From NCBI GenBank assembly GCA_977017575.1, contig CDRNVI010000198.1:1-62171 (forward strand): a stretch of DNA of 62,171 nt. Reading direction: 5' to 3'. Position 1 is the stretch's first letter. The number at the start of each line of letters is the position of its first letter. This DNA is from Paramoeba atlantica (lineage: Eukaryota > Protista > Discosea). The notes under the pieces were generated by a model. It saw only the letters and a program-made list of their open reading frames with translations, did no database searches and was not told where the DNA came from. A program made the translations under genes and the position numbers. Of the stretch, positions 1 to 44,500 are shown in pieces.

Positions 1-935
1 CCTAAACCCTAAACCCAAACCCTAAACCCTAAACCCCTAAACCCTAAACCCTAAACCCTAAACCCTAAACCCTAAACCCTAAACCCTAAACCCTAAACCC
101 TAAACCCTAAACCCTAAACCCTAAACCCTAAACCCTAAACCCTAAACCCTAAACCCTAAACCCTAAACCCTAAACCCTAAACCCTAAACCCTAAACCCTA
201 AACCCTAAACCCTAAACCCTAAACCCTAAACCCTAAACCCTAAACCCTAAACCCTAAACCCTAAACCCTAAACCCTAAACCCTAAACCCTAAACCCTAAA
301 CCCTAAACCCTAAACCCTAAACCCTAAACCCTAAACCCTAAACCCTAAACCCTAAACCCTAAACCCTAAACCCTAAACCCTAAACCCTAAACCCTAAACC
401 CTAAACCCTAAACCCTAAACCCTAAACCCTAAACCCTAAACCCTAAACCCTAAACCCTAAACCCTAAACCCTAAACCCTAAACCCTAAACCCTAAACCCT
501 AAACCCTAAACCCTAAACCCTAAACCCTAAACCCTAAACCCTAAACCCTAAACCCTAAACCCTAAACCCTAAACCCTAAACCCTAAACCCTAAACCCTAA
601 ACCCTAAACCCTAAACCCTAAACCCTAAACCCTAAACCCTAAACCCTAAACCCTAAACCCTAAACCCTAAACCCTAAACCCTAAACCCTAAACCCTAAAC
701 CCTAAACCCTAAACCCTAAACCCTAAACCCTAAACCCTAAACCCTAAACCCTAAACCCTAAACCCTAAACCCTAAACCCTAAACCCTAAACCCTAAACCC
801 TAAACCCTAAACCCTAAACCCTAAACCCTAAACCCTAAACCCTAAAACCCTAAACCCTAAACCCTAAACCCTAAACCCTAAACCCTAAACCCTAAACCCT
901 AAACCCTAAACCCTAAACCCTAAACCCTAAACCCT
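1..935. repeat. Telomeric array (CCCTAAA)n / (TTTAGGG)n, about 133 units
   Basis: Near-perfect 7-bp tandem repeat from base 1 to 935, with C-rich strand on + as expected for a left chromosome end. A few variant units: CCCAAA near 14-19, an extra C near 34-37, an extra A near 845. Confidence 0.98.
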
Positions 936-3900
936 TTAGTCTTCCTAGTATATCCTTCAAGTCTTCTAAATGTTTTTCAAAGGAATTGCTGAAACAGATA
1001 ATGTCATCAACATATGCAAAACAGCATCTCCATATGAGTCCATTCAATACAGCTTCAATATAACATTGTTGTGTTGCTGGAGCATTACACAATCCAAATG
1101 GCATTGAGAGAAATTCCCAAAGTCCATATTTGCTTGTAAAAGCTGTTTTTTCAACATCTTGTTGTTGGATCGGAATTGACCAAAAGGCATCTGTCAGATC
1201 AATTGATGAGAAATATGAGGAATTGCCAAGGGCTCCAAGAATTGTATCCATTCTTGAAAGAGGATATGCATCCTTCTTTGTGACATTATTAAGACGACGA
1301 AAATCAACACAAAATCGGATTTTGCCATTCTTTTTGTCTGCCAATAGAATTGGTGAAGCCCATGGTGAGGTTGAAGGTTGAATTACTTTTCTTTTCACCA
1401 TTTTATCAATATGTTTCCAAATAATGTAATCTTCAGCAGGAGTTGTTTTTCGAGGAACTGTGCAAACCAGTTTAGCAGTTGCATCAGTTTCGATCTTATG
1501 CTCCATTGCTGTTGTTTGGGTCAATGGATCTTCTCTTTTTTGTTCATCCCAAAGGTCTTTAAATTCAGTTAGCAGTTCTGCTAATTTAATTTGTTGTTGA
1601 GAATTCAAGTTTGTAGCATTGATTTGAAATGTCTCATATGCTTCTTTTAATTCAGATTTCATTTGATTTTCTTCACCAAAATCCAGTGGTTCATTTTCTG
1701 GATTTGCAAGGAGAGCAAAAACTTGATTTATCTTTGATTTGTCAAAAGCATCTGTTTCCATTGTTGGATTTATTTTGGGTTGTTTTTAACTTTGAATTGG
1801 GGAGATTTCTTCTGCAAAATTTTCTGAAAATTTGCGTTTTCATCCCTCTTTAAGAAACAACATCTTATTTTCTTTAGCAACCCAAGCATCAAGCCAAGGG
1901 CTGTTGAGAGCTTTAAAATAGTTTGCTCCCACTTTTGAATTAAATGGTTTCTTTTCTTTTGATTTTTGATCTTGTTCTTTTGTATTCACCTTTTTTACAG
2001 GTTGAATATCTTGAAGATCAAGGAGCGAACGATTTGATATTTGAAGAAGTTCTGTTTGTTCAACATCATCATCGTTAATCTCATGTATGGAACCAAGTTC
2101 CCATCCTTTTTTAAGTTTTACATATTTGTTTGTTGGATTAATTACCAATATGTTTGATTGATAGATGTTTTTCTTTCTTCCAGGTCTTTCTTTTTGGGTA
2201 ATTGAGATAAGACCTTGTGAAGCAATTAATTTGCCTTTTCCACTATCTCTTGGAAAGAAGAAACATTCCGGTGATGAGACTTGTCCTTTTGCTGTGAGTG
2301 GCACTATCACAGCCGATCTTGGGGGAATGCCACTGGTTACTGCTGTTGTGACCAGGGTCTTACTTCTCCGGTTCCTTCTGTCATCAAGAAGTTCCAAGTC
2401 CGGACTAAGTTCATTCATTTGAAGATTATTTTCTTTTGGCTTTGCCTGAACAAGCTTTTTTTCTTGCCACAGAATATAATTGCTATCCGTTCCAAGTTTT
2501 AGTCTTTTCATAGCTGGCCAGCCTATCAATGTTTGAACAGGAAGGTGGTCGAATATGAAGAACCATAAATTGGCTTCAAAATGTGAGAATTTTACTCTCA
2601 GTAAAACTTCTTCATTTACAACAACTTTGGAAGAATTTCCAACTGTGACTTTTAAAGTATGGATTTTTCTTCTTCTTAATATTTGAATACCAGGTCTTTT
2701 TAATTATTGTAAACTGATTGCATTAATTCCAGATCCTGTGTCAAGGCATGTTGTTGAATTTAGATTGCCTATTTTCGACTCAAATTCCAGAGGTCCCCCG
2801 ACATCACGGCTTTCTTCTCCTTTTTGTTCAATTTGACTTAAGGAGAGGATGCGGATGGGTTCTGAATTGGTTAATTCTGGAGAATTAATTGCCATTTTGT
2901 AATGTTCAGTTGGGATATCATGGACATCCATAAATTGTCTATTTTCTTTCTCTTGTGTATTTTCTTTCTCTTGTGGAGAAGGATTTTTACTTGAATTTTT
3001 ACAAGAAAGATCAGAATATGGTGTATCATAATTTATTGGAGTTTGTTGAGTTTGACCACTACTTTGTATGAAGAGACTTTTCAATTCATTGAATTGTTGG
3101 TTCATCTTTTCATCCATTTTGTGGGCAAATTCTTCAAATTCTTGTTTTCTTTTTTTATGTGGGTCTTGGTCTCTATTTGAACCTTGACCTTGTTGTTTTT
3201 GTTGTCCTCTTGGACCTTGATCTTTCAACCCTCTTTTCCTTTTTCTGGTTACTTTGCAGCGTTGCGTAATGTGGGTATCTTGATTACCACAATGGCGGCA
3301 ATATTTCAACCCTTTTTGCATCGCTTCTTTCACCAAAGGACAATTTTTGGGTACATGACCAAAGTCTTCACAGGCTCGGCATTGCAACTCCTGTGCCCTC
3401 TTTCTTGCCTCTTTCAGCTCTTGTCCATTAGGGTTCAAGGCTAATGAAAGGGAGTTTCAGGTCTTATCAGCGAATTGTTTTGTTGGGTAGTCCTTTTGGT
3501 ACTGGACAGTCAGAGCAATAGAAAGCATGTCACCTCCTTTAGCTGTAGCTTTCGCTCCCTCCCATGTCCGATGGTACGAAGAATCTTGTACTTGGGCTTC
3601 GAAAATGTCTCTAACTTCTTCAAGTTGGGTGTCCTCACTCCCCTTTTCCTTGACAGCAATGTTCAAGAACTTCATTGTATGAGTCATGAAGTCCTCAGAG
3701 ATATCGAACTTGTACGAGTAAAGAGCACTTGTATCAGTATCAAGGGGTTTGTAAATGTGACTTGAAGCCATGCAGAGATCAAAAACCAACTTCTGGAAGG
3801 TTTGAGGATGACCGATGATGTCAAGTCCGAATGCTATCAACTTGGGTCGTGCGAGGGTTACAGTGAGTTCATTATTTGGCCACCCATTGGTTTTCCAAAC

Positions 3901-4802: not shown

Positions 4803-5169
4803 CTTTTCCACACACAATCAAAAGAAAGAATTGAGAAAATCAAAGAAAAACAAAAGGTTTCTTTTTTAGCACACCTTATGCTTCGATGTTTTTCGTCTCT
4901 TTTGGATAGAATTGTCACCTTAATCAATTCGATTCGTAAATCTTTCGAAAAAATTCGTTAGTTTTTTGCAATGTATAGAAATTGATTATTTCACTTTTCC
5001 ACACACAATCAAAAGAAAGAACTGAGAAAATCAAAGAAAAACAAAAAATTTCTTTTTTAGCACACCTTATGCTTCAATGTTTTTTGTCTCTTTCAGATAG
5101 AATTGTCACCTTAATCGATTTGATTCGTAAATCTTTTGAAAAAATTCATTAGTTTTTTGTAATGTATAG
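4803..5169. repeat. Two 176-bp direct repeats (period 191 bp) in the retroelement leader/LTR region
   Basis: 4803-4978 and 4994-5169 align without gaps (cttttccacacacaatc...aatgtatag), with 12 substitutions by eye. Confidence 0.9.
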
Positions 5170-6250
5170 GGCTCAAAAGGAATATCTGAAATCACTTCAA
5201 CTCCAAAAAATGCCACAATTGCAAGTGCAGCTTGAGCTCACCCCCATGTGTGTTGTTGTAAGTGGTTGTTGGAAGTTTTATTTTTGTTTTTGTTGTGATT
5301 TTTTGTTTTGTCATGTAATTTTCAGTGGAAATGTACACTTGGAGGGAGTGTCAGGTTGTGAGAGTGTTTCAACTCTTGAAGATGTTTCTCAATTTGGTGT
5401 TGTTTTGTTGTTTCCTTTGCATTTTCCCAATTCAGGAGCATTTTATTTTGCCCAAAATTGTGTTTCATCATGAATTTGGTTTGTATTGCTTTTGTTGTGC
5501 TTTGAGCAGAAGTTGTAGAAAACCATAGTAAATTTAGGAGATTTAAACTGATCTGTTTCCTTGTTTTGTTTGTATTAGTAGTAGAGATGCACCACTCTGT
5601 ACTCCATCAATTGAAGATCCAAGAGTTGAAACATATTGTTGGAACCAGTGAAGAGTGGATTGTTCTAAATTCAACTTTGTGGAGTTGGATCAATTCCCCT
5701 CTAGTCTGTGAACTAGGTGCCTTCTCAATCCCTTCAATGAATTTTGTAAGAAAGTTCCAAGGAAACACACAGTGACTACTCCTCACATATTGTTTCCAAC
5801 TCAAAGTGCTCTTGAAAATGCTCTAATCCTCTCTCTGTCATTATTACTAAGGACATTCAGGAATGGATTCCCCAGTCCCAAGAGAAGGATTTTGTGAAAA
5901 ACTTTATGGAAGATGACTTTCAAAGGAATGTTAAAGAACTATGTGTTTAAGTCTTAATTTATCTCCCCTTTCCCCAAGTCCTTTCTTTTCCCCCTTTTCC
6001 ATCTTAGTGAAGGTTTTTTAATTTCAATAAATGGCATCTGGTGTCTGACAAACAAAAAAAAAACCCTACTACATGACCAAGCTACATTGTACAGCACATT
6101 GTACAGCACATTTTAATTTTCTTTTTTTGTTTGAGCTGGTTTTCTAGTTAGTCCCTAAATCAAAAAAACAAAAAGTGAGATTCCATTTCTTTCCCACACA
6201 ATCATTATTTTAAAAATGAAAAAAATTGAAACAAAAAAAATGAAAAAAAA

Positions 6251-9200
6251 TCAAACCTTTAATTGAATGATTAGTTCAACAATGCTTTCATCTTTTGCAA
6301 CATCAAGTACTGTTTGTCCATTCTAAAAACAAGAAAAGAAAAGAAGTTCAAAAAAAAAAAGCTCATTTTTCCAATAACCCCACAAATAAAAAAATAGCAA
6401 AATAAAGAAATAAAAAAGAAAAAAAAAACATCAAAAAAAAAAAAAGAAAAAAAAACTTTGTTTTGAATATTAACATTGGCACCATACCCAATCAAAATCT
6501 GTACAATTTCTTCAAAACCATTAGAAGCAGCTATGTGAAGGGGGGTCCAACCATTCTAAAATATTAAAAAAGAAGTGTTAAAAAAGAGAAAAAAAATAAA
6601 ACAATTATAAAACCCATTAATTCCCCTCTCTATCACAGCAATATAAAAAAAGAGAATAGATTTTTAAAAAAAGAGAAAGAAAATGAAAACTTTATCTTGA
6701 TGATGTATGTCAGACCCATGTTCAATAAGAATTTTTACAACTTCTTCAAAATCTTTGGAAGCAGCTGCATGAAGAGGGCTCTGACCAATCTGAACATAAA
6801 AAGAAGTTTAAAAAAGAAAAAAACATATATCATATATAATATCAGAGAATAACCAACACAGATCAGAAACACCAAAAAAAGAAAAAAGAAAAAGAAACAA
6901 TATCAACAAAAAGAACCTTATTTCCAAGATCAACATTTGGTTTTCCTTTTTCCAATAAAATTTGAATAATTTGTTCATGTCCATTATGAGCAGCAATATA
7001 AAGAGGAGTTACTCCTTTCTTTTTACATTAAAAAAAAAAAATAGAAAAATGAGAAAGTGAAAAAAATGAGAAAATGAAAAAGAAAACACAATCAACAAAA
7101 TAACACCTTAGTTACAAGATCAACATTTGCTCCTCCTTTTTCCAATAAAATTTGAACAATTTGTTCATATCCTTCTTGAGCAGCAATAAAAAGAGGAGTT
7201 GCTCCATTCTTTTTACATTAAAAAAAAATAGAAAAATGAAAAATGAGAAAAAGAAAAAGAAAAAAGAAAACAATCAACAAAAGAACCTTATTTGCAAGAT
7301 CAACATTTGGTTCTCCTTTTTCCAATAAAATTTGAACAATTTGTTCATATCCTTTTTGAGCAGCAATATAAAGAGGAGTTGTTCCACTCTTTACATTTAA
7401 AAAGAGAAAAATGAGAAAGTGAAAAAAAAAAAGAAACAATCAACAAAAAAGAACTTGGTTTGCAAGATCAACATTTGCTCCACCTTTTTCCAATAAAATT
7501 TGAACAATTTGTTCATGTCCTTTAAAAGTAGCAACAAAAAGAGGAGTTACTCCATCCTTTACATTAAAAAAAAAAATAGAAAAATGAGAAAGTGAAAAAA
7601 AAAAAGAAACAATCAACAAAAAAGAACTTGGTTTGCAAGATCAACATTTGCTCCACCTTGTTCCAATAAAATTTGAACAATTTGTTCATATCCTTTTTGA
7701 GCAGCAATATAAAGAGGGGTTACTCCTTTCTTTACATTAAAAAAAAAAAATAGAAAAATGAGAAACTGAAAAAAATGAGAAAATGAAAAAGAAAAAAAAA
7801 AACACAATCAACAAAATAACACCTTAGTTACAAGATCAACATTTGCTCCTCCTTTTTCCAATAAAATTTGAACAATTTGTTCATATCCTTTTTGAGCAGC
7901 AATATAAAGAGGAGTTGTTCCATTCTTTTTACATTTAAAAAAAAATAGAAAAGTGAAAAAGTGAAAAAAAAAGAAAAAGAAAAAGAAACAATCAACAAAA
8001 GAACTTGGTTTGCAAGATCAACATTTGCTCCACCTTTTTCCAATAAAATTTGAACAATTTGTTCATGTCCTTCTTGAGCAGCAATATAAAGAGGAGTTGT
8101 TCCATTCTTTTTACATTAAAAAAAAAAATAGAAAAATGAGAAAGTGAAAAATAAGAAAAATGAGAAAAAGAAAAAGAAAAAGAAAAAGAAACAATCAACA
8201 AAATAACCTGATCTGCAAGATCAACATTTGGTTTTCCTTTTTCCAATAAAATTTGAACAACTTGTTCATGTCCTTCTTGAGCAGCCATAAAAAGAGGAGT
8301 TGCTCCATACTTTACATTAAAAAAAAAATAGAAAAATGAGAAACTGAAAAAAAAAGAAAAAGAAAAAGAAACAATCAACAAAATAACCTTCCTTGGAAGA
8401 TCAATATTTGCTCTTCCTTTATTCAATAAAATTTGAACAATTTGTTTATGTCCATTTTGAGCAGCAATAAAAAGAGGAGTTGCTCCATTCTACATTAAAA
8501 AAAATAGAAAAATGAGAAACTGAAAAAAAAAGAAAAAGAAAAAGAAAAAGAAACAATCAACAAAATAACCTGATCTGGAAGATCAACATTTGCTTTTCCT
8601 TTTTCCAATAAAATTTGAACAATTTGTTTATGTCCATTTTGAGCAGCAATGTAAAGAGGAGTTGCTCCATCCTTTACATTAAAAAAAATTGAAAAAATGA
8701 AAAAAATGAAAATGAAAGAGAAAAAGAAACAATCAACAAATAACCTTCTTTGCAAAATCAACACTTGGTTTTCCTTTATCCAATAAAATTTCAACAATTT
8801 GTTCATATCCATTTCGAGCAGCAAAAAAAAAAGGAGTTCTTCCATCCTTTAGTTGCAAAAAAAAATCGAAAAATGAGAGAAAGTGAAAAAAAAAAAAAAG
8901 AAAAAAAATCAAATTCAAAATATCAATCATAATATCATAATATCATAAAAAGAGAAGAAACCTTATCTGCAAGATCAACATTTGGTTTTCCTTTTTCCAA
9001 TAAAATTTGAACAATTTGTTCATATCCTTCTTGAACAGCAAATTGAAGAGGAGTTGTTTCATGGAACTAAATAAATTTTAATAAAAGATAAAGTGTTTTG
9101 TTCAAAAAAAAAAAAAGAGAAAAAGAACCAAAATGAATTTCAAAAAAGAAACAAAAAAGAAACAAAAATTGTTCTTATTGAAATTTAAAAAAAAAATGAA

Positions 9201-10042
9201 AAAAATAACAAAACTTGTTCAACAGCATTGATATTAGCTCCTTGATGTAATAACAACTCAATTTTCTTTCCATCCCCTTTGAAAGAACCACAGTGGAGAT
9301 CTGTTATTCCAAACTGTTTTTGTTTTTTGTTTTTTGTTTTTTGTTTTTTGTTTTTTATTTTTTGTTTGAAAAAAAAAGTTAAAATTGTGGTGTGGTGAAA
9401 CCCCTCCAATTTCCACCCCCCCTCTCCCTCTCCCAAAAAAGTTGAAAAACATAAGGTCCATTTTTTAAAAAAGAAAAGAAAAAAGAATAAAAAGAACATT
9501 GGGGTATTCATGTTTTTCCACCATCTCAAAAAGTATCCCAATTTGAATCCAATTGTGATCCACAAAAGCAATTTTGAATAATTCCTTTTGTTTTTCAAAA
9601 ATATAATTAAAAAAGATTAATTTAATATTAAATTAAAATAAAATGTTGTTTCATTGAATCAAGACATAGACAAAAAGAGAAAGAAGAAGAAAGAAAACAA
9701 AGAAATAAACAGTCAGAAAAAAGAAGCAGAAAAAAGAAGCAGAAAAAAATGATTGACACAAACCTCAAATGATTTTTCTTTCAATTCTTTTCTCATTTTC
9801 TCTTCTTCTTCTTCTTTTCTCTTCTTCTCTTCTTCTTCAATTCTCAATCTCACTGCTTCAAGTTCTTCATTTTCCACTTTCGGTCTTTTAATCACTCCCT
9901 TTCTTTGTTTTTCTCTCCCTTTCTCTTCTTCTTCTTCTTTTCTCTTCCTCTTCCTCTTCCTCTCTTCGTCTCTTCTCTTCTCAGGACTCTCTCTTTCTCT
10001 CACCACCTCCTCTTCCATCATATTTCTCTCATTCGAATTCAT
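6251..10042 (-). CDS. Multi-exon ankyrin-repeat protein (charged N-terminus plus about 16 ANK repeats, one repeat per exon)
   Basis: GT-AG exons: 10042-9764, 9584-9498, 9313-9215, 9066-8962, then eleven 102-nt exons (8846-8745, 8671-8570, 8489-8388, 8309-8208, 8106-8005, 7924-7823, 7729-7628, 7556-7455, 7388-7287, 7208-7107, 7018-6917), 6789-6691, 6555-6457 and 6322-6257. They translate to xGxTPLxxAAxxGxEQIVQILLEKG..NVD. The 3' end is uncertain: stop at 6251-6253, or one more exon near 6155-6115. Confidence 0.92.
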
Positions 10043-11064
10043 TTTGGAAAAGTAAAACAAAAATAAAACAAAAATTTCCCACACCTCAGGTGAAACGAGT
10101 GATCAATTTTAGTGTATGATTTTGTTGAGAACTGATGAGAGAGAAAAAGAAAAAGAATTTTCAAAAAAAAAAAAAGAGAAAAATAAGAATGGAAGAATTA
10201 TCTCAAAAAAAAAAAGAAATTCAACCTCAAAATCTCAAACAAAAAAGAAAAGAAAAAAATCAAAAATCTCAAACAAACAAAATCAAAAAGAGAAAAAAAA
10301 GCCACACAAAAAATGAATAAAATATGGTTTGCTAAATAAGGAATAAATCCAAATAAGGAATGAAGTGATCCGTTTCCGAATTTTCCAAAAACGACAAAAT
10401 TTGGTTTTGCTTGATTGGTTGATTCGGTTTTCCGAAAAGAAAGATAGGGAAACAGAGGTTTCTCTCCTCTCTCTCCTCTCTTTCTCCTCTCTCTCTCCTC
10501 TCACTCTCCTCTCTCTCTCCTCTCTCCTTACTCTCTCCCTCTCCTTTCTCCTCTTGATTGAAAAAAATCCTTCTTCTCTTTCTATCCCTCATTTTTGAGA
10601 AAAATGTGTCAGCAGTGAGATATTATTGAAGAAAGATTTTCTCCTTCTTGTGTGTGGGAAAAATATTGGCTCAGAAAAAACTGTTGGAAAAAAGGAAAGA
10701 GAGAGCTTATCAACCTTAATTTTTTATCATTGAACTGACACAGAGAGAGAGAGAGAGAAATAGGGTTGTGGTCTGTTTTTCAACAAAAAAGAAAGAAATC
10801 GTTTAGCGTTGTTGTATGTTGGGGTGGGGGGAGGGAGAGAGGATATGGTTGGTTTGGAACGAGAGTGTGGTGGGGGTTGGGGATGTGTTGTGTAGAGAGG
10901 ATGGTGTATGTACTTCGAGAGTCCTCCGTTGTAATCAATGGATTCTTCTTTCATCAGTCCATTGGAGGGGTGAAGAGAGAGAGGGAGAGGGAGAGGAAGA
11001 GAGAGAGAGAGAGAGAGAGGGTGGGAGGGAGGATGGTCTTGTCAGTATGAAAAAAGAAGAAGAA

Positions 11065-12571
11065 TCAATCTTGTTGATGCGAAAATAGGGACGCTTCTCC
11101 TCCTTGTAAATAATTCTGAGTTGGTGCTGGGGGATCATTTTGTTGTTGGTGATGGGAGTGGGGGTGGTGGAGGTGGTGGTGAGATGAGTATTGGGGGGGG
11201 ATGTGGTGGTGATGTGGTGGCAGTGGAGGTTCTTTTTCTTGGAGTGGTAACAACAACCCACCACCCCTTGGCCAAGGTTTTAGAGCGTTTTTGGAGGTGA
11301 TGGTGGTGGTGGTGGGTGGGTGGTTGAGTGGTTGAAACCGCTTTGTGCTGCTGCTGAAGAGGAGGTTGTTTGGTGAGGGAGTGGAGAGAGGGATGGGAGG
11401 GAGGGTAATAATGGAAGAAAGAGAGGGGAGATGATGATGATGATGCTTTTGTTGTTGTTGTTCTGATTGTTGATGGGATGGTTTTGGTGGTGGTAGTTGT
11501 GGTGATGAATCAAAAATTGGTCCTCTGCTGCTGCTGATGGATTTAAAAGGAAGAATAATATTGGGGTGATGATTTCCTTCTTTTGAAGGGAGGACGGAGG
11601 GTAGAGAAGAAGAAATTTGTTGTTGTAGGGGAGGTAAGAGAGGAGTGGCGGCAGTGGTGGTGATTGTGGCGGCAGTGACAGCAGCAGTGGAGGAAGTAGC
11701 AGCGATGGCAGTCCGAGTAGCACTCCTTTTTTGTTGTTGTTGTTGTTGCTGTGAGGAAACAAAAGAAGAAAAAGAAGAAGAACCAGAAAAATGTTGTTGT
11801 TCTTGCATATTGTCATGTTGATCCACAGAATAATCATCAGAATGACCTTCTCCTATGGATTGTTGTGATTGTTGTTGTTGTGTTGCAACACATTGTTGTT
11901 GTTGTTGGAATGAAGTTGTTGTTGGAATTATTGATGAGGTTCTTGTCACCAACTCGCTCTCACCAATCTGCTGAAATCGAGAGTTTTCAACAACAACAGG
12001 GTGAGGAGAAGGATAATGATGATGAAAACATTCTTAGAAGAGATTGGGGTCATCTTTTCGAAGAACCGCTGCTGCTGCTGCTGCCTTTGAAAAATTCTTG
12101 GTGGTGTTGGTGATGGCATTAATATTTCTTGAGGACTCATCATCATCAAGTCCTCTTCCTCTTCCTCTTCTTGATGAATTTGTTGTCTCTTCTTCTGTTG
12201 CTGGGATGATGTTGAGTAGTTGGTGATGTTGGAGGAGAAGGAAGAGGAAGATAATGTTCACAGAAGAAAACTTTTGATGCTTGAGGAGGGGGTTGAGAGT
12301 GGCAATAGAGCCTGGCATAGTCTTCATTCCGCAAGACTCGAACACGACAAAAATTCTTTATCTTCTTTTCAAAATCTTCTGGAGAACAGGAAGAATACTG
12401 ATACAATTTTGGGGACTTTGAGTTGGAGATTATTGTCAAGGAAACTTGGCACCCACAGAGAATCGAGATTTCCATTGCTTTCTTGATTAGACCACTCTTT
12501 CTTTTCGAAAACGTATTTTGTTGGAATCGCCTATCTGAAATTTTCTTGATTGGTAGTTTCTTTCTTCCCAT
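11065..12571 (-). CDS. MADS-box (SRF/MEF2-type) transcription factor with low-complexity Q/S/P/H tail
   Basis: N-terminal MGRKKLPIKKISDRRFQQNTFSKRKSGLIKKAMEISILCGCQVSLTI is a MADS domain. Two inferred phase-0 introns (12271-12201, 12029-11968) join the three open frames. Confidence 0.85.
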
Positions 12572-13111
12572 TTTTCTTTTCTCCTCTCAGCTCTCAGCCT
12601 TTCTTTCTCAGCCTTTCTTTCTCTGTCTTTCTTTCTCTCTTTTCTTTCTCTTTTCTTTTGAAGCTTTCTTCTCTTCAGCCTCTCTCTATTTTGTGTGACC
12701 GTTTCGGGGCAGACTCCTTTTGTTCTTCGTGGCCTAAAAAAGAGTATTATTTTTCTGCAAGATTTCTACAACTAAACTCTTTTTGAACACAGAACTTTTT
12801 TTTGGCAAAAAAACTGTTTGGGAACGAAAAGAAACAAAAGAATAATAAGAAAGAATAATGTATTTTTTGTTTTGGTCTTTTTCTCTCCTCTCCTCTCCTC
12901 TCCTCTCTTCCTCCCCCTATTATCTTCTTCCTTTCCCTGTTCTCATTTTTTTTTTTGTTTTGTGATGTGATTTCTTTTTTTCTTCATGTGTGTGTGTTCG
13001 TTCCCTTGAAGTGAGGTAAAGAGAGAAATCAGATTTTTTTTTGAAAGTGATATCTAACAAACACTTTGAATAATAGACACATAAAGCACCCCCCAAGGAG
13101 CCCAAAAAAAA

Positions 13112-14210
13112 ATATTGTTGAAATCAACAAATGAAAAATATGTTCTTCTCTGAACGGCTGGGGTCAGTTTTCTTTTTGTTTTCTTTTCGCCAATTTGTGC
13201 GTCCCTCTTTTCCTTTTTTTTTTCTTTCTTTTGCTTAATTTTTTTTGTTTGTTTTTCTTTCCTTATTTTAGAAAAAAGAAAGGAGAGGGGTTGTGCACTA
13301 CTGGCTTCCAAAGGGTTCGCTGTGTTGCATTTTTCCCCTGAGGAAGGAATAAGGAATCATCCCCTGAGGAAGTGAGGGACTCCCTTAAGAAATCAAACAC
13401 TGCTATCCAATCTTCAGGGTTTAGATGTTCCTTCCTCCCAGCATGTCAATCCCCTCCTCTGGTGGTGCGGTTTCCGCGGATATAAATGCTTTCTTCAAAG
13501 TGCATTGCCTCGGAGGTTCTACGAAATGAGTCAGGAGCTCATATGGACACAGAGGTACCACTTTGAAAAGTTTCCATTCACTCAAGTGAAAGTGATCGTA
13601 TGCTTAGAGGAGGGCCTGACGCTGCTGGGGTGAGTTGCTTCTCCAGAAGTCTTCAAAAAGACATTTGGTGAGGTTTGGTTTGAACTCAAAGAGCGGGATT
13701 GGTAAACTGAAATCCAGGAGCCAAGAAAGGCTGTCTGATGGGTGTTCCTTCTAAGAGTAACTTAAACCCCCACCCTTAAACCTTTTGACTTTGGGATGCC
13801 AGCAGCTTCTATCTGGGAGCGGTGGAGTTCTTCATTTGGGTGGAAAATACATTGTTGAAAATCAACGATGAAAAAAATACTCTTCTGCGATCGCCGGGCA
13901 GTTTTTTTTTTTCTCCGTTCTTTTCGTTTTTTTTTGGGGGGGGGGCGGGATGAAAGAAATTTTTTTCTTTTCTTATTTTAGAAAAAGAAAGGAGAGGGCT
14001 TCACACTGTCCTGCATTCTGTAGTGAAAGGCCAGAGAAGATTTTTTAGAAGGGGTATTATTGAAATCAACAATGAAAAATACTCTTCTGTGAACGGGTCA
14101 GTGTTTTTTTTTACCCCCCCTTGTTCTTTTCGTTCTTTTGGCCAATTTGAGCGTCGTTCCTCTTTCTTTTGGTTAATTTTGTTTTTCATTTTATTTTTCG
14201 AATTTTTTTG
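13112..14210. repeat. Three related 150-200 bp modules (about 13112, 13849, 14056) flanking GC-richer degenerate sequence
   Basis: Shared core (a/t)attgttgaaatcaacaatgaaaaata..cttct. Two copies are followed by T-rich tracts ending in ttattttagaaaaagaaaggagaggg, which look like + strand GT..AG introns. Confidence 0.6.
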
Positions 14211-14762
14211 AATAAAGATAAAATTTTATTTGAGATCAAATGGTTTTCAAAGAAGGGGAATAACGGTCGAGGATGAAGATGCTGGGAGAAAGATGATACA
14301 TCACCTAGGAGATCGGAGAGAGGATAATATTTGTTTAAGGGTCTGTTTCTCCTCAGGGGTGGTGTCTTTGTTCCTTCCTGCATCATTGAAGTCTGCCTCA
14401 TTTAGTGGCCACTCTCAACATATTCCCCTTACATATCATAATTCTTTGTATTGGTGCGCGGGTGACTGAGGGTGTCACCCATGTGTGTCAGAGCGGGGCT
14501 TGTTGGGTTGTCGGATCACATGCCAAAAGCGTGTGGGGTTTCGTGGCTGGACACAACCCCCGAAACATCAATGCACAGTGCATCACCCAGGTTTTGGCCT
14601 CCAATGTCCCACAAAACCACACACACAAACTGTTGATTTCATTGAATTTTAATTTTATTTTTTGATTTGGTTTTCTCGAAGTATTTAGGAAGGGTTTGCT
14701 TTTGAGGAATCTTGCTGACTTGAAAAAAGAACGGAAATATAAAAATAAAGAAGAATTGAAAA

Positions 14763-17700
14763 TTATCCTTCCCATTTTAATATATCAACTTTGTCTTTGT
14801 TGTGTTCAACTTTTACATGACAACAAAAACTGTGAATACAAAAGATAACTGGAACAAAAAAGATGACAATCCCAATTCCCACAAACACAAAGAAAACTGG
14901 ATTGAATGTAAATTCACCAGGAGGATTCAATGGAAAACATGGAGTTTCTTCATCCATGACACACATCCCAGTCCCTTCTTCAGAACAACAACGGGGGAGT
15001 GGACAATTAATGAAATTGTTTCTCAGGTCAAAATCAATTGAGCAAAGCCAAGTTTCTGGATCAAGAACCCCACTCAAAGAATTGGATTTCAAATTCCTAA
15101 TGAAAAAAATCAAAATTAAACAAAACAACAAATTTGTTTGAAATAATAAATAATAAAAAAAGAACGAACAATTTTTGTAATTTGTAAAGGTCAAATAATT
15201 CAGATGGAACTGTTCCATTGAACTTGTTATGAGAAAGCAACCTAAAAAAAAAAAAATCAAATCAATTCAAAAAAAAATCTGAGGAAAAAAAAAAGGAAGG
15301 AATCACAAACAAGTTTTGCATTTTGAAAATTTCTCCAATTTCTGTTGGAATTTCTCCTTCGAATAAATTAGAAGTTAGATCTCTGCAAAAGAAAGAAAAT
15401 TAAAAAGTAGAAGAGAAGGTTTGAGAAAGAAAGAAGAAGAAAAAAATTATGTTATTCAATAATATTTGAGAAAGAAAATATTCATACAAATTCGATAATC
15501 GAGAGATTTCTCCTATTTGGGTTGGAAGAGTTCCATTGAATTGATTTCGAGAAAGGGACCTTTGAATAAAGGGAGTCAAAAAAAAAAAAAAAGATACAAT
15601 AATAAAAATTATTATTATTTATTATTTATTATTTATTATTTATTATTTATTATTTATTATTTATTATTTATTATTTATTATTTATTATTTATTTATTTAT
15701 TATTATTTATTATTATTTATTATTATTTATTTTAAAAAGAAAAAACATCATACATGACAGTCAAATGAGAGAGTCTTCCAATTTCGGTTGGAATTTCTCC
15801 CTCTAACAAGTTGAAATTGAGATAACTAAAAAAATTCAAAAAAAAAAATCAATCAGTTTCAACAAAATAAAAAGAAAAAGAAAAAAGAAAGTTGCATACA
15901 TTTCCTCTAATTTTGTAAGCTTTCCAAGGTGTGATGGGATTGATCCACTTAACAAATTGAATTCAAAATACCTAAAAAAATCAAAAAAAAAAAAAATTAT
16001 TCCAAAAACTCTTTGCATTTTTACATATCACTTTTTTGAAAAATTTGGGAAAGACATACAAGCCAAGCATTTGAGTAAATCTCCCAACTTCCGTAGGAAT
16101 TGTTCCAGTTAATGAATTGCAACAAAGATCCCTTTCAAAAGAAAAAGAAGAAAATGATTAACAAATTGATTTAAATAATCAAAAAAAGAAAAACAAAAAA
16201 GGAACAAAAAAAGGAAGAAAAGGAAGAAACATACAGCCATTCTAATTGGACAAGTTGTCCAAGTTGTGTAGGGATTTTTCCACTCAACGAGTTGGTTGCA
16301 CAATCGCTGTCAAAAAAGAAATAAATAAATAAGATTTTAAAAAATCAAAAAGAATTTCTCAAATCGTTTCTTCAATAATTTAGTAAAAAAAAAAACTGAA
16401 TTATTTTCTAATTTAAAAATTGTTGAATATTCAAAAAAAAAAAAAAAAAAGAAAATCATACAAATCTGCTAACTGAGAGAGTAATCCAAGTTGGGTTGGA
16501 ATTTTTCCAGTTAAAGAGTTAACGGAGAGGTATCTAATCAAAGAGAAATCATAATTAAAATTACTTCATTCAAAGCAAAATAAATGCAAATAAAAAATAA
16601 AAAATAAAAAATAAAAAATAAAAAATAAAAAATAGAATCCAAAATTAAGAAAATATAATACTCCAATTGAGAAGAATAATTCCTTTACATAAATTAGAAA
16701 ACACATTTAAAAAAAGAAAGAAAACATACAAAATATTTAAATGGGAGAAGTTTTCAATTTCTGTGGGAATTTCTCCATCTAAAATATTGGAACTCAAGTC
16801 CCTGAAAAAGATAAAGAAATTTAAAATTTAAATTTAAGAGTTAGAAAAAGAAAACAGAAAAAGGAAAATTAAAAAAAAACAAAAGAAAAATATTTTAAAA
16901 AAAAAAGATGAAAGAAAAAGGATTTAAAAAAAAAATCATTACAATTGTAACAACTGAGAAAATCGGCCAATTTCTGTTGGGATTGTTCCACTTAAAGAGT
17001 TGAAATTAAGAAACCTGAAAAAAAAAAGAAATGAATCAAAAGAGAAAAGAAAAAAAGAAAAAAAAAAAATTAAATATCACAAGAACAGAAAAGAAAGAGA
17101 CAAAAGGAAAGAGGCAGAAAATGGAGAGAAAGGGAGAGAAAACAACAACAACCAGAGAGAGAGAGAGAGAGAGAGAAAGAAAAAAAAAATCATACAAATA
17201 ATTGAGGTGGTAACTGTTTCCAATTTGAGTTGGAATTGTCCCCGTGAGAGAATTAAAACCAAGTTGCCTTGAAATTGAATGAATTAATTTTGTTTTGTTT
17301 CCTTTTTTTTTTTGCAAATGTGAAAATTGGATGAAAGTTGAATGAAAGAAAAAAGAAAAAGAAAAAGAAAAAAAGAAAAGAAAGGAAAAGAAAAGGGAGG
17401 GAAAAAAAAAAGAAAGAAAGAAAATGATACAAAAAATTCATTTGATTGAGTCTCCCAATTTGAGTTGGAATTCCTCCACTAAGCGAATTTGAAGAAATGC
17501 CACTGAAACATTATAATAAATAAAAGAAGAAAAAAAAGCTCTCCAAAGAGTCAAGGAAAAGAGAAAAGAGAAAAGAAAAGAAAAGAAAAAAGAAAAAGAA
17601 AAAAGAAAAGAAAAAAGAAAAGAAAAAAGAAAAGAAAAAAGAAAAAGAAAAAGAAACAGGTATTTTAAAGGAGAAAGATCTCCAATTTGAGTTGGAATGG

Positions 17701-20644
17701 TCCCATTAAAAGCATTGGTATTTAACGAACTGAAAAAAAAAAAAGAAAATGAAAAAAATATAAAAAATAAAATGAAAAAAAATGAAAAAAAAAAAAATGA
17801 AAAATGAAAATTAAACTCAATTTCAATATTTTTCATTCTTCAACAATCCAAAAAAAAAAGAAAAAAAAAGAAAAAAAATGAAAAAAAAAAAAGAAAAGAA
17901 AAGAAAAGAGAGAAATTAAACATTTTAGTGATGCGTTTGAGTTTCCCAATTTGGATTGGAAGAGTTCCCTCTAACAAGTTGAAATTCAAGGATCTAAATT
18001 GCTCACATCAACAAAAGAGATAAAGAAAAAGAAAAAAGGGAAAAAGGAAAAAGGGAAAAAGGGAAAAAGAACAAAAGGAAAAAAGGAAAAAAGGAAAAAA
18101 GGAAAAAAGGAAAAAAAAAGGAAAAAAGGAAAAAAAAAGAAAAAAGGAAAGGAAAAAAGGAAAAGATACAGTTCTTGCAATTGAGAGAGTTCTCCAATTT
18201 CATTGGTAATTGTTCCAGTTAATTGATTGGTCGAAAAGTCCCTAAGAAAAATGAAAATGAGAAAACGAGAAAAACAAAAACAAAAAACAAGAGAAAGAGA
18301 AAGAGAGAAGAAAAAAAGAAAAAAGAGAAAGAGAAAAAGAGAAAAAGAGAAAAAGAGAAAGAGAAAATCATACACTATTTCCAAATTACGGAGTTGTGCA
18401 AATTCGTTTGGGATTCCACCAACAATTTTGTTTTTGAAAAGACACCTAAAATTGAGAAAAAGAGAGGGAGAAAGAAGAAAGAAATCGAGGGACAAAAAAG
18501 GGGGAAATGGGAAAGGGGAAGAGAAGAGAAGAGAAGAGGAAGAGAAGAGAAGAGAAAGAGAAGAGAAGAGAAGAGAAGAGAAGAGAAGAGAATCAGACAG
18601 AAGCACCAGAAATAACAAGAAAACAAAGACAAAAAAAAAACCCCAAAAAGAAAAAAGAAAAAGAAAGAAAGAAATACATTGAAGTCAGAGAGGTCATATT
18701 TCCTACTTCAGTGGGAATTGTTCCTTCCAATGCATTCGAAGAAAGATCTCTTTTAGAGGAGAGAAGAGAGAGGAGAGATATGAAGAGAGAAAAAAAGGGA
18801 AAGAGGAGAAGAGAAAAAGAGAATAGATGAGAAAAAAGAAAAGAAAAAATAAAAATAAAATAAAAATAAAATAAAAAATAAAAATTAAATAAAAAATAAA
18901 AAATAAAAAATAAAAAATAAAAAATAAAAAAATAAAAAATAAAAAAATAAAAAAATAAAATAAAAAACAAAAAATATAAAAAAACAAACAATTTTTGTAA
19001 AGTGGTGAGCCCTCCAATTTGAGTTGGAATTGTTCCATTCAACGAATTCTTTGAAAGATCCCTTTGAAAGAAAGAAAGAAAGAAAGAAAATAAGAAGTAA
19101 GAAAAGAAAGAAATAAGGAATCTAAACAAAAGAGAGAGAGAGAGGGAAGAGGGAAGAGAGGAAAGAGGAGAGAGAAGAGAGGAGAGGAGAGAGAGGAGAG
19201 AGAGGAGAGAGAGGAGAGAGGAGAGAGAGGAGAGAGAGGAGAGAGAGAAGAGAAGAGAAGAGAGGAGAGAGAGGAGAGAGAGAAGATGAAACAAAATTCA
19301 TACAAAGTAATCAATCGAGGAATGAGGCCTGTTGCAGCCGGAATTGTTCCACTCAATTGGTTTGAAGAAATATCCCTATTATTAATACAATGAATACAAA
19401 AATAAGGAAAAGAAAGAGAAGGAAAGAGAAGGAAAGAGAAGAAAAAGAAAGAGAGAAAGGAAAAAAGAAAGGAAAAAAAAGAAAGGAAAGAAGAAAAGAA
19501 AAAAGAAAAGAAAAGAAAAATGATACAAATTATACAATTGAGTGAGGGTTTCAAGAGTTGGAACTGTCCCTGATAATAAATTGGAACCAAGATTCCTACA
19601 ATCTCATTGAATTAGAAAATTAAGAAGAAAAAAGAATAAAAAATAAAAAATAAATCAGAGGGAGAAAAGAGAAAGAAAAGAGAGAAAGGAGAAAGAAAAG
19701 GGAAGAGAGAGAAAAGAGAGAGAAAGAGAGAAAAGAGAGAAAGAGAGAAAAGAGAAAAAATACAAGAATTGCAATTGAGAGAGCTCTCGGAGATCTGCTG
19801 TGACAGTTCCAGATAAATAGTTTTTCGCAAGAAGCCTTTAAAAAATTTCAATAAATAAATAAAAATGTTTTGAAATTCGAAAAAGAGAAAAAGAGAAAGG
19901 AGGAAAAAGAAAATAAAGAACACAGAAAATAAAGACAATTAAAAAAAAAACACAAAATAAAAATACATAAAAAAAATACATTCTATTCTTCAAAAATCCG
20001 CATATCAAAAATAAATAAACAAAAAAAAAAAAAAAAATAAAATAAAATAAAATAAAATCAATTACAATTGAACAACAGAAAAAGTATTGTCATCAGAAAA
20101 ACAAACAACCTTTTCCCAATTATTTTGACAAGGACAAACAAAAAACAAAAAACAAAAAACAAAAAACAAAAAACAAATAACAAGAAAAAAGAAAAGAAAA
20201 GAAAAGAGAAGAAAAGAAAATCAATTACAATTGAACAACAGAAGAAGTATTGTTATCAGAAAAACAAACAACATTTTCCCAATTATTTTGACAAGGAAAA
20301 AAACAAAACAAAAAACAAAATAAAATAAGAAAAAAAAAAGAAAAGAAAAGAAAAGAAAAGAAAAAGAAAAAGAAAAGAAAAAGAAAAAGAAAATCAATTA
20401 CAATTGAACAACAGAAGAAGTATTGTCACCAGAAAAACAAACAACATTTTCCCAATTATTTTGACAAGGATCACCATTAAGCCACCCAGCTTTTGTTCTC
20501 CAATTTTTGCCGTCTGTTCCCCAATATAAATTGGACAGAGCTGTTTTTTTTTTTGTTTTTGTTTTTTTGTTTTGTTTTGTTTTTTGTTTTTGTTTTGTTT
20601 TGTTTTTGTTTTGTTTTTGTTTTGTTTTTTTGTTTTTTTGTTTG

Positions 20645-40992: not shown

Positions 40993-41590
40993 AAAAGAAA
41001 AAGTTAAATTTATTCCATTTCCTGTAAACAATAAAATTAATAATTATTTTTGATAACAACAAACTCCCAAGAAATTGGTAGCTTCTCTCTTTTTGTCATG
41101 TCTCCAAAAAAAAAAGTTCTTTTTTGAACAAACAAGAAAAGAGTTTCCCTTTTTCCCCTTTTCCCTTTCTCTCTTTTTCTTGTGGGCAAAGAAAAAGAAA
41201 AGAAAAAGTGTCGAAAAATAACAAACCAAAACAAACCAAATAAAGAAAAACCAAAAACTAAAACAAACCAAATAAAGAAAAACACAATTCGCCAACAAAG
41301 CGAAAAACGTAAAATCGCAAAAACCGTTGTGCCCTTTTCAGAATAGTCCCATCCAGGTTTTTGCAATGCTTTTTTGAGCTTGCGAACACCTTTTGATTTT
41401 TTTGGTTGTTTTTTTCTCCCTCTTCTTTTTTTGTTTTTTTGTTTTTTTTTGTTTTTTCTTCTTCTTTGTTCTCTTTTCTTTCTTTCTTTCTTTTGTTTCG
41501 GTCTCTTTGGTCTCTTTGGTCTCTTTGATCTCTTCTCTTGTTTTTATTTTCCCTCTCGTTGTTCGCTTCTTATCGTTTTCCTCCGTCAAA

Positions 41591-44500
41591 ATGAGACGTT
41601 TCAATTTTTGTTTGATTCTTTTCTTTATGGTGGTGTTACAACCAACAACAACTGTGGCAACAGATTGGTTTGTTTCTCCAACTGGCTCAGATAATAATAA
41701 TGGAGAGAGTCGAGATTCTCCTTTTCAAACGATTGAGAAAGCATTTGTTGAGTGTAAGACTGGCGATACAATTTTTGTTTTAGAAGGAATCTATCCTTCG
41801 AAAGGAAATATTGGTTTGAGGATTAAAGAAGGTCAATTGAAAGATGTTGATATTGAGAACGGTGATGCTCTTGGTTCTGCGGTTTTGGATTTGTCTGATA
41901 ATGCTCAACAGCTTCCTTTTCTTTCGACCGAAAAAGGTGCTCAAGGGAATATCAAAATTAAAGGACTGTTTTTCCAGAATGCTGAAGCTACTATTTTTCT
42001 TTTGGAAGGAGGAACCCAATTCAAACTCCTTCTTTCTCGTTTCTCTTTCTCAACTGGAGGAGTTGCGGAGATCTCTGCGGTTGAGGATGTGGATATTCAA
42101 GCTACACTCTTTGAACAAAATTCTGGAAAGAATGGAGGAGTGTTGTCTGTAACCGATTTCTCAAATCTTTCCATCTCTTCTTGTGTCTTCTCCAACAATT
42201 CAGCAGAAGAAAATGGAGGAGCTTTATTTACTCAAAATGGAGATACAGTAACGGTTCAACAGACAGCTTTCGACGGCAATACAGCGGAGAATCAAGGAGG
42301 AGCGATTTTAGTTTCTTCTTCTTCTTTTTCTTTTGAACAATGCACTCTTTCGAATAATCAAGCGATGCAAGGAGGGGCGATCTCGGTTGTACAAGGTGAT
42401 TTGATTCTCAAAAACAATACATTTACATCGAATGTTGCTGTTCTTGGTGGAGCTCTTTTTATGGATAAGGAAACAAATCCAAATGTAGGAGGGGTAAATG
42501 CTTTAGACTCCAACTATTTCTTTTCGAATGAAGCAATTGACGATGGTGATGATGATAATAATGGAGATGGAGGAGCTGTTTATTTGAGAAATCCAACTCA
42601 TTTTAATATTTTGGGTGTAACTTTTTGGAATAATCAGGCCTCTTTTAGGGGTGGTGCTTTGTTTGTTATTGGGCAAGGAATTATTTCTTCTTGTATTTTT
42701 GAGATTAATCTTGCCCAGAGAGGTGGTGGCTTGGCTGTTGTTAACAGTTTCATGGTTTGTTTTATTATTATTATTATTTTCTATTTTTTTTTAAATTTTG
42801 AATGGAAATAGTTTGCATCAATTGGAAATAAATATGTCAATAATAATGCCCCCTTGGGAGGAGGAGTTTATATTGTGAATCAAGTCGCCGCTCTTTTTTA
42901 CACTGTATGATTTTTTCTTTTTCTTTTTCTTTCCTCTTTTTCCTCTCTTTTTTTTTAAATTTTCTTCTTTTTTTTTAAAGGATACTTTTTATGGGAATAA
43001 TGCTCCACAATATGGTGGGGGAATTTTCTTTGATGATGTGAAATTGCCAACACAAGTTGGCTTATCTTCATTTATTGTAATTTTCTTTTTTCTTATCCCC
43101 TCTCTTTTCTCTTCTCTTCTTTTCTCTTCTTTTGTTTTCCAATATTCATTTTTCATTTTAAAGAACAACTACTCGCCAAACGGGAATCATGTAAGTGGAA
43201 GTGTCTTTGATATCGATAATGACCTGAAATTTGAAGTTGTTGAATTTACAAATTGTCAATTTGACCTAGGTATTCTTTTTTTTTCTTTCTCGTCTGAAAT
43301 GAAATTTGAAGGGACTGATTTTTTCCCTCTTTCTTTCTCTTTTCTCCTTTTCTTCAAAGGACTTGGACCATCCGATATTTTCGCTGAAAAATCTCGATTT
43401 GTGTTTTTAAAGAGTTGTGATTTGCCAAGGATTGAACTCCATGAAAATTCAAAAGCTTTCATTTGTAATTGTGAAGGCACTGCCCAAATTTATAGTCTTC
43501 AGACTTCAAATGGTAAGTGAAAGAGAAAGGAAGAAAAAGAGCTTGAGAAAAAAGAGGGAAAAAGGAGAAAAGGGAAGGAGAAAGAGAAAGAGAAAGAAAG
43601 GGAGAAAAATTGTATGTTACTTGAGTAACTGTTGAGAATAGGAGAGTTTTATGTTGATAGCGACTTTCAATTTTCGAATCTCTCGGGTGATTGGAGTGCA
43701 TCCCTGATCTCTCAAATCGACAAGTTAATATTTGTTTTAAAATTTGAAATTCGTTATTTGAAGAAGATAAAAAAGCATGAGAGAAAGAAAAAGAATACAC
43801 AAGAAAAGAGAAAGATCATTTTCCTTCAAAATTACTTCACAATAGATATTTCATTTTTCAAAAGAATATTTCACTAATATTTTGAAAAAATCAGTTCTTT
43901 TTGTGTGAAAGGAGACAACACAACTTCTCTTACTTTCCCCACTCAAATTACTATGGAAACAAACGGAAAAACTCTTTCAATCCAACCAAACAACGACGAC
44001 AACAACCTTGACCTAAATTGGGTTAATTGGACCAATTATTTGGGAAATCTTCAAATTGAAAATGAAGGAGTTTTGGTCGTTGGGAATGGGACATTTTTAA
44101 ATCATGGTAATTTAAGTATTCAGGAGGGTTCTGAGATTGTTGTTGGTGATAGGCTTCTTAATTTTTATGGTGGGGAAATTACCTTGGTTGGTTCTTCGAG
44201 TGTTGCGGGGGATTTAGTTTTGATGGAGGGGGGAAGAATGGTTTGTTTTCTTTTTTCTTTTTTCTTTTTTCTTTGTGTTTATTTCCCAATTTGACAATTC
44301 TCTCTTTCTTTCTTTCCACATAACAGAAACTCGAATACGAAACTCTCCCATCCTCACTCAACAATACAGCCACTCTACAAAACACCCTAAAAATCTTCTC
44401 AAACGTCACTCTCATCATCTCCATCACAGAGAGCAGCACTCTCCCAGTAGACGAAGTAATCGCTCTCTTAGCCTGGGAAGACGTCAAAGGATTTTTCATT

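Follow-up and report, generated by a model that had tools for sequence, protein, structure and literature searches.

Probable cassette-built family of ankyrin-repeat binding proteins near chromosome ends of Paramoeba atlantica

Fungal NOD-like receptors (NLRs), a group of NACHT and NB-ARC proteins that includes HNWD, het-e and het-d of Podospora, carry ANK, TPR or WD repeats with high internal conservation and polymorphic repeat numbers (Dyrka et al. 2014, PMC4986451). These repeats undergo concerted evolution, are shuffled within and between family members, and show positive selection at a few positions of the concave face, located in the inner helix and the beta-hairpin/loop (PMC4986451). 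The ROCO-LRR and NB-ARC-TPR genes of brown algae such as Ectocarpus encode one repeat per equal-length phase-0 exon and are subject to "highly dynamic exon shuffling" (Zambounis et al. 2012, PMC3341825; Teng et al. 2024, PMC11378527). For these genes, exon gain and loss, diversifying selection, orphan or antisense exons inside introns and alternative splicing have been reported, and they have been proposed to provide a variable receptor repertoire (PMC3341825, PMC11378527). Here we describe a gene on the minus strand of a 62,171-nucleotide stretch of Paramoeba atlantica DNA (GenBank assembly GCA_977017575.1, contig CDRNVI010000198.1, positions 1 to 62,171; hereafter the window), which contains a tandem array of exon cassettes that each encode a single ankyrin repeat. 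We consider it likely that this gene belongs to an inherited family of binding proteins built from such cassettes, diversified by recombination and kept diverse by selection.

The logic of the Paramoeba gene is shared with both described groups (PMC4986451; PMC3341825, PMC11378527), so that the label of an undescribed system, proposed for it in the initial annotation of the window, was overstated. As in the ANK repeats of fungal NLRs, the number of repeats varies and copies exchange sequence: there are 11 units in the window, 12 in a close copy on contig C218 and about 14 in a paralog on contig C189, and one unit is a chimera. As in the brown-algal receptors, each repeat occupies one phase-0 exon of constant length, here eleven exons of 102 nucleotides (nt). 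Fungal NLR repeats, however, are contiguous coding DNA placed behind NOD and effector domains, whereas the Paramoeba gene is distinguished by its one exon per repeat, its location at a chromosome end, its 34-residue repeat and a conserved C-terminal tail encoded by a micro-exon. The brown-algal repeats, in turn, are LRRs (on 72-nt exons) or TPRs combined with ROC-COR or NB-ARC domains, while the Paramoeba gene encodes only Ank repeats and no such domain, and its array contains none of the orphan or antisense intronic exons of the algal genes. It works like the fungal and the brown-algal systems, which are the closest known cases, but belongs to neither. We see no sign of a new diversity-generating machine; a germline mechanism of a known kind suffices.

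A further point of comparison are the designed ankyrin repeat proteins (DARPins). Like the Paramoeba repeats, they combine a constant, self-compatible framework and capping repeats with variable residues in the beta-turn and at the end of helix 1, and individual Paramoeba exons can be aligned to DARPin and consensus-ankyrin chains. DARPins, however, are man-made from 33-residue repeats with six randomised positions, whereas the Paramoeba repeat has 10-11 variable positions (including 7, 8, 14 and 26) and an extra loop residue. We regard the likeness as one of analogy, not of family membership. The literature yielded no usable statement on genes with one exon per ankyrin repeat. The repeats of the membrane domain of human ANK1 are encoded mostly by single 99-nt exons.

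With regard to its genomic distribution, the family resembles the subtelomeric contingency families, such as Plasmodium var, trypanosome variant surface glycoprotein (VSG) and the yeast FLO genes and adhesins, which are large, lie at chromosome ends and give rise to variants by ectopic recombination. Their products are surface or secreted proteins, often with mutually exclusive expression. The Paramoeba ankyrin family shares the size and the concentration at chromosome ends, but its predicted products look intracellular. Systems of somatic assembly of the lamprey variable lymphocyte receptor (VLR) type start from an incomplete germline gene flanked by donor cassettes that lack splice sites. 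Here, in contrast, the gene is complete, every cassette is bordered by its own AG..GT, and donor-only cassettes are absent from positions 5000-10600.

Anatomy of the cassette array and its gene

The array and the gene that contains it are placed as follows.

6917..8846, minus strand: cassette array of eleven 102-nt phase-0 exons and ten homologous introns of 66-101 nt
6113..10042, minus strand: inferred gene of 19 exons, all phase 0, with GT..AG introns and no stops, 665 codons plus stop

The initial annotation had recognised eleven 102-nt phase-0 exons with homologous introns, one ankyrin repeat per exon, and each part of this description is borne out by Tandem Repeats Finder, a splice-site scan and Pfam. 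Tandem Repeats Finder reports 11.1 copies of a 182-nt period with 82% matches between 6874 and 8912. On scanning the reverse strand for AG-exon-GT, all eleven cassette exons were found to have an AG acceptor and a GT donor, to be free of stops and to have only phase-0 junctions. They start at 8846, 8671, 8489, 8309, 8106, 7924, 7729, 7556, 7388, 7208 and 7018, each running downward for 102 nt. The ten introns between them are clearly homologous, sharing 5' gtt(a/c)ttttgttgattg and 3' ...ttctatttttttaatgtaaag, and differ in length mainly in T/CT runs. Exons and introns of the cassettes are recent copies of common origin.

Taken singly, cassette exons match the Pfam Ank model PF00023 with E values of 1e-6 to 1e-10 (cutoff 21.1 bits), and the exon ends coincide with the ends of the model. 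An exon-by-exon scan of six exons, each submitted alone, gave PF00023 matches at E 2e-6 to 5e-13, with 28-49 bits against the curated cutoff of 21.1. The cassette repeat has 34 residues and thus departs from the 33-residue period; aligning one cassette exon to the chains of ankyrin-1/2 and of DARPins requires a gap of one residue in the loop that follows helix 2, indicating a length variant that is still an ankyrin repeat. The earlier description therefore holds as regards the nature of the cassettes, and needs amendment in that they have 34 residues rather than the canonical 33 and are preceded by a twelfth, related exon of 105 nt.

Between the window's units, mean identity amounts to 86.6% at the nucleotide and 70.7% at the amino-acid level. 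Helix 2 is nearly invariant, while positions 1, 3, 7-8, 11-12 and 32-34 vary, in agreement with the initial annotation, and so do positions 14, 26 and 27. Amino-acid identity is 35% at the 11 hypervariable positions, compared to 88% at the other 23. When set against the definition of repeat conservation used in the fungal study (>85%), the nucleotide identity and the identity at the 23 non-hypervariable positions lie above this value, and the overall amino-acid identity lies below it.

The 19-exon model was derived from the sequence, with each exon translated separately. A Pfam scan of the exons found only Ank families and no NACHT, NB-ARC, ROC-COR or other domain; the first two exons match no Pfam family even at E values of up to 1, and exon 1 does not begin with a hydrophobic, signal-peptide-like stretch. 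The model leaves no room for an N-terminal effector combined with a NACHT or NB-ARC domain. The predicted products are best explained as soluble ankyrin-repeat binding proteins that lack a signal peptide and any enzymatic or signalling domain.

Family and unit turnover

The gene is best explained as one intact member of a large, mostly subtelomeric family. In the 45.7-Mb assembly, the exon-plus-intron unit is matched at least 260 times, on no fewer than 14 contigs, and when the contig ends were checked directly, 10 of 14 array-bearing contigs were found to have telomere repeats at the end nearest to the array. A strict filter is passed by 194 of 257 exon-like matches, and most of the others are intact variants. 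For the family-wide analyses below, we used 15 fetched loci together with the window, which yielded 164 intact 102-nt and about 50 99-nt ankyrin exons. A word search with the read-through open reading frame (ORF) of the array returned only ORFs of an ENA assembly; nine of these share 97-100% identity with other loci of this genome, suggesting that they come from another assembly of the same species. No counterpart of the locus at 6113-10042 was among the ORFs returned, and a scan of JGI metagenomes for the conserved core of the cassette exon found nothing.

A close copy of the locus lies on contig C218, which also starts with a telomere. Positions 9292-19727 of this contig correspond to 5469-15883 of the window as a colinear segment of ~10.4 kb, with unrelated DNA on both sides, and this segment is either a recent subtelomeric segmental duplication or a structurally divergent haplotype. 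The two copies are nearly identical outside the cassette exons: the proximal flank differs at 35 of 5526 aligned bases (0.63%), the eight non-array exons at 4 of 776 nucleotides and 1 of 291 residues, and the array introns at 6 of 475 nucleotides. Their arrays, in contrast, comprise 11 and 12 cassettes, respectively. The C218 array contains two extra units between units 4 and 5 of the window; a further unit is chimeric, with the 5' part of window unit 8 joined to the 3' part of unit 9 at a breakpoint within the exon, and in yet another unit the 3' half and the adjacent start of the intron are of another type. The paralog with about 14 units, on C189, is more diverged. For the eleven exons of the window, the pairwise homoplasy index (PHI) test likewise indicates recombination (p=0.006). 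Changes in the number and content of units at the DNA level, which the initial annotation had envisaged, can thus be read off from two near-identical gene copies: gain, loss and chimerism of units occur in the germline, by in-register recombination.

In the C218 copy, the second cassette (12714-12815, minus strand) has an Arg in place of the otherwise invariant Gly2, and the sequence around its acceptor is altered (ggtcaag). In a gene that is intact elsewhere, this one unit may be damaged or skipped.

It is conceivable that turnover of this kind reflects a programme by which cells or clones vary their binders, either through regulated exon skipping or through mitotic or somatic recombination of cassettes; this is the boldest suggestion of the initial annotation. 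With all 19 exons in phase 0 and cassettes of equal length, every skip or swap would remain in frame; a subtelomeric position favours ectopic recombination, and units have been gained, lost and fused between copies only about 0.6% apart. Moreover, alternative splicing of tandem one-LRR exons has been reported in brown algae (PMC11378527). However, the gene is complete, with ordinary splice sites on every cassette, and the window array holds no silent donor cassettes and no inverted or intronic orphan exons. The introns contain no conserved element beyond what shared ancestry and splice signals account for, diverge at the synonymous rate and show no bias towards lengths that are multiples of three, and differences between assembled copies are germline differences. 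We therefore judge programmed diversity of this kind to be quite improbable. The same holds for a more elaborate version, which we view with strong doubt, wherein sister amoebae would express different binders through clone-level use of cassettes, with a shared ..KPA..KKxx tail plugging them into one effector or trafficking partner. If combinatorial use within a clone did occur, it would amount to an adaptive-like, contingency-type form of intracellular recognition in an amoebozoan. A special function of the introns was considered separately and rejected, as they diverge like synonymous sites and have lengths free of frame bias.

Selection on the repeat surface

Across the family set, sequence entropy peaks at positions 1, 3, 7, 8, 11, 12, 14, 26, 32, 33 and 34. 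Exon positions 1, 3, 11, 12, 32 and 34 we take to be DARPin positions 3, 5, 13, 14, 33 and 2, respectively, based on the register of the alignments; the list of randomised DARPin positions is said to go back to Binz et al. in 2003. In this register, obtained from Pfam and chain alignments, the variable positions coincide with the classical recognition positions of ankyrin repeats, as the initial annotation had claimed with the same list in mind.

For counting by the method of Nei and Gojobori (NG86), we defined codons 1, 3, 11, 12 and 32-34 as surface codons. Family-wide, the proportion of nonsynonymous differences (pN) at the surface is 0.417, compared to an overall proportion of synonymous differences (pS) of 0.106. 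To avoid non-independence, units were then combined into greedy nearest-neighbour pairs, so that no unit entered more than one pair; choosing neighbours by exon distance makes the comparison conservative for surface sites. Among 61 such pairs, surface nonsynonymous differences amount to 0.188 per site, versus 0.052 for synonymous sites and 0.073 for introns (Fisher p about 1e-26). Measured against the synonymous rate of the surface codons themselves (0.094), the ratio is about 2 (p 4e-4). Tests per site in 82 independent pairs locate the excess at positions 1, 3, 7, 8, 12, 14, 26, 32, 33 and 34, where nonsynonymous change is 2-5 times faster than at synonymous or intron sites. In the same pairs, many framework positions have ratios near 1, and the core positions G2, T4, P5, L6, A9, G13, V18, L21, L22 and K24 change at roughly 0.2 of the synonymous rate. 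The core codons are under purifying selection, and by counting, positions predicted to lie on the concave binding face, according to the alignment register and the literature, are under positive selection.

This conservation of the core also bears on the idea that the array is a decaying, non-functional, minisatellite-like structure that merely resembles exons. In favour of this idea, the array is tandem and lies in a repeat-rich subtelomere next to a retroelement. However, all 19 exons are open and have canonical splice sites in both the window and the C218 copy, the core codons evolve at about 0.2 of the synonymous rate, and the non-array exons of the two copies differ by one amino acid in 291, which makes decay hardly credible.

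More serious is the alternative that the gene encodes an ordinary scaffold ankyrin with a recently expanded tract, the surface of which is unconstrained while the rest is homogenised by concerted evolution, such that nonsynonymous/synonymous rate ratios (omega) above 1 would be produced artefactually by codon bias, conversion and the shortness of the sequences. The surface positions are generally the least conserved ones in ankyrin repeats, which is why they were chosen for DARPins, and this general property speaks for the scaffold, as do the many framework positions with ratios near 1 and the fact that neutral conversion could explain the pattern between the window and C218. It would also gain support from ungapped intron windows, in which mismatches reach 0.13-0.27 and are thereby as high as at the surface. 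As a neutral proxy, however, these windows had to be rejected, because indels, at 0.26 gapped bases per aligned base, raise their mismatch values. A gapped aligner, calibrated by simulation and accurate for true substitution levels of up to 0.2, gives a difference of 0.090 between random intron pairs, consistent with the synonymous sites; altogether, the calibrated intron rate of 0.07-0.09 matches the synonymous range of 0.05-0.11 and lies 2.6-4 times below surface nonsynonymous change. Homogenisation alone cannot make unconstrained sites more diverse than neutral ones.

The non-cassette repeats of the same genes provide an internal control. Between paralogs, exons 16 and 17 have pS values of 0.26-0.31, and their ratios at the surface-equivalent positions are 0.9-1.0, which again argues against an unconstrained scaffold surface as the source of the excess. 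For exon 16, pN/pS is 0.57 overall and 0.89 at these positions; for exon 17, the surface-equivalent ratio is 1.00. Compared to these controls, the cassette exons are younger or more homogenised and, in addition, enriched in amino-acid changes at recognition positions. The initial annotation had asked whether the variable sites exceed what ordinary ankyrin repeats show, and as far as counting methods tell, they do. We thus regard the scaffold alternative as unlikely.

Several points nevertheless weigh against a binder family whose diversity is maintained by selection. In hypervariable codons, synonymous and third-position differences are themselves about twice as frequent as in other codons (0.097 versus 0.043), which could be an artefact of counting multiple hits, or could stem from micro-conversion or a locally raised mutation rate. 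Counting methods (NG86, independent pairs) are not recombination-aware codon models, and the units form a recombining network rather than a tree. Codon bias in an AT-rich genome may constrain synonymous sites and thereby inflate the ratios. In nine positional pairs between the window and C218, surface nonsynonymous differences reach 7.1% (11/154; p 4e-4 versus introns), but neutral conversion of existing differences could produce the contrast of 11/154 to 6/475, so that this figure shows fast reshuffling rather than selection. At the family level, the PHI test is not significant (p 0.06-0.11). Finally, the gene model, and with it expression and isoforms, is a reading of genomic DNA.

Proposed mechanism and chromosome-end setting

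Even with these points taken into account, we favour inherited cassette-built binders under selection for diversity, and the regular structure of the array suggests how they would arise. As the cassettes are always 102 nt long and in phase 0, an in-register crossover or conversion yields an in-frame, foldable protein in which the repeats differ in number or order. Unequal crossover and gene conversion would act within a gene as well as between copies at different chromosome ends, and the subtelomeric position would help both processes. Selection for new or different targets would then maintain the diversity of the resulting germline repertoire, and candidate targets would be proteins of microbes, of viruses, of prey or of the amoeba's own symbiont. 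The constant ends of the protein, a charged N-terminal tail and a C-terminal ..KPA..KK.. micro-exon, may link the variable binders to a common partner or place.

If this reading holds, the amoeba inherits a large library of ankyrin binders that stand alone, a natural counterpart of DARPins. Its cassettes would be duplicated and recombined in register, and selection would act on the binding face, as in the candidate immune receptors of fungi and brown algae. Hypervariable families of repeat receptors would thereby extend to a new eukaryotic supergroup, with a new architecture in which a variable binder is combined with a short constant tail, free of any signalling domain, and encoded at chromosome ends. 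It would also supply data from nature on the framework and the paratope of an ankyrin scaffold with 34 residues. In practical terms, it raises the question of what the binders recognise, and what reads the constant tail.

The exons outside the array, together with the telomere tract, are as follows.

9764..10042, minus strand: exon 1, a 93-residue N-terminal tail rich in K, E and R with a basic RKRKRKRK cluster; 100% identical in the C218 copy
9498..9584, minus strand: exon 2, a 29-residue helical, N-cap-like exon specific to a five-member subfamily
9215..9313, minus strand: exon 3, a degenerate 33-residue N-terminal ankyrin repeat with a weak Pfam Ank match (E 0.018)
8962..9066, minus strand: exon 4, the cassette-related ankyrin exon of 105 nt; the intron after it, of 115 nt, is diverged; Pfam Ank E 1.2e-6
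6691..6789, minus strand: exon 16, a canonical 99-nt (33-residue) ankyrin repeat outside the cassette set; Pfam Ank E 4e-9
6457..6555, minus strand: exon 17, a canonical 99-nt ankyrin repeat conserved family-wide; Pfam Ank E 5e-13
6257..6322, minus strand: exon 18, a 22-residue C-cap half repeat; identical in C218
6113..6154, minus strand: exon 19, a 42-nt terminal micro-exon encoding the 13-residue basic tail ..RKPAQTKKEN, plus stop
1..936, no strand: telomere tract (CCCTAAA)n, read directly at the contig start

Exon 2 has five copies in the genome, on the window's own contig (C198) and on C218, C189, C142 and C153, whereas exon 17 has about 40 related copies. The C-terminal tail, G.T[RI]KPA[QR][TA]KK(EN/GT)-stop, ends 11 ankyrin genes in the fetched loci (L011, L012, L013, L015, L016, L018 and L020). 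All 11 tails fit the C-terminal KKxx pattern, which we take to resemble a di-lysine COPI-binding signal, if only a putative one.

The subtelomeric location proposed for the gene finds direct support in the CCCTAAA repeats at 1-936; the end of the gene lies ~5 kb and the start of the array ~6 kb from this tract. A reverse-transcriptase ORF at 913-1761 (minus strand; Pfam RVT_1, E 1.6e-23) runs straight into the telomere repeats, the last of which ends at 936. Just upstream of the ankyrin gene, and inside the segment shared with C218, a MADS-box (SRF-TF) ORF occupies 12146-12571 (minus strand; E 1.6e-16). At a greater distance, a 472-residue ORF at 41393-42811 (plus strand) contains repeats of the Chlamydia polymorphic-membrane-protein type (PF02415, E 4e-18), a bacterial-type beta-helix repeat within a eukaryotic contig.

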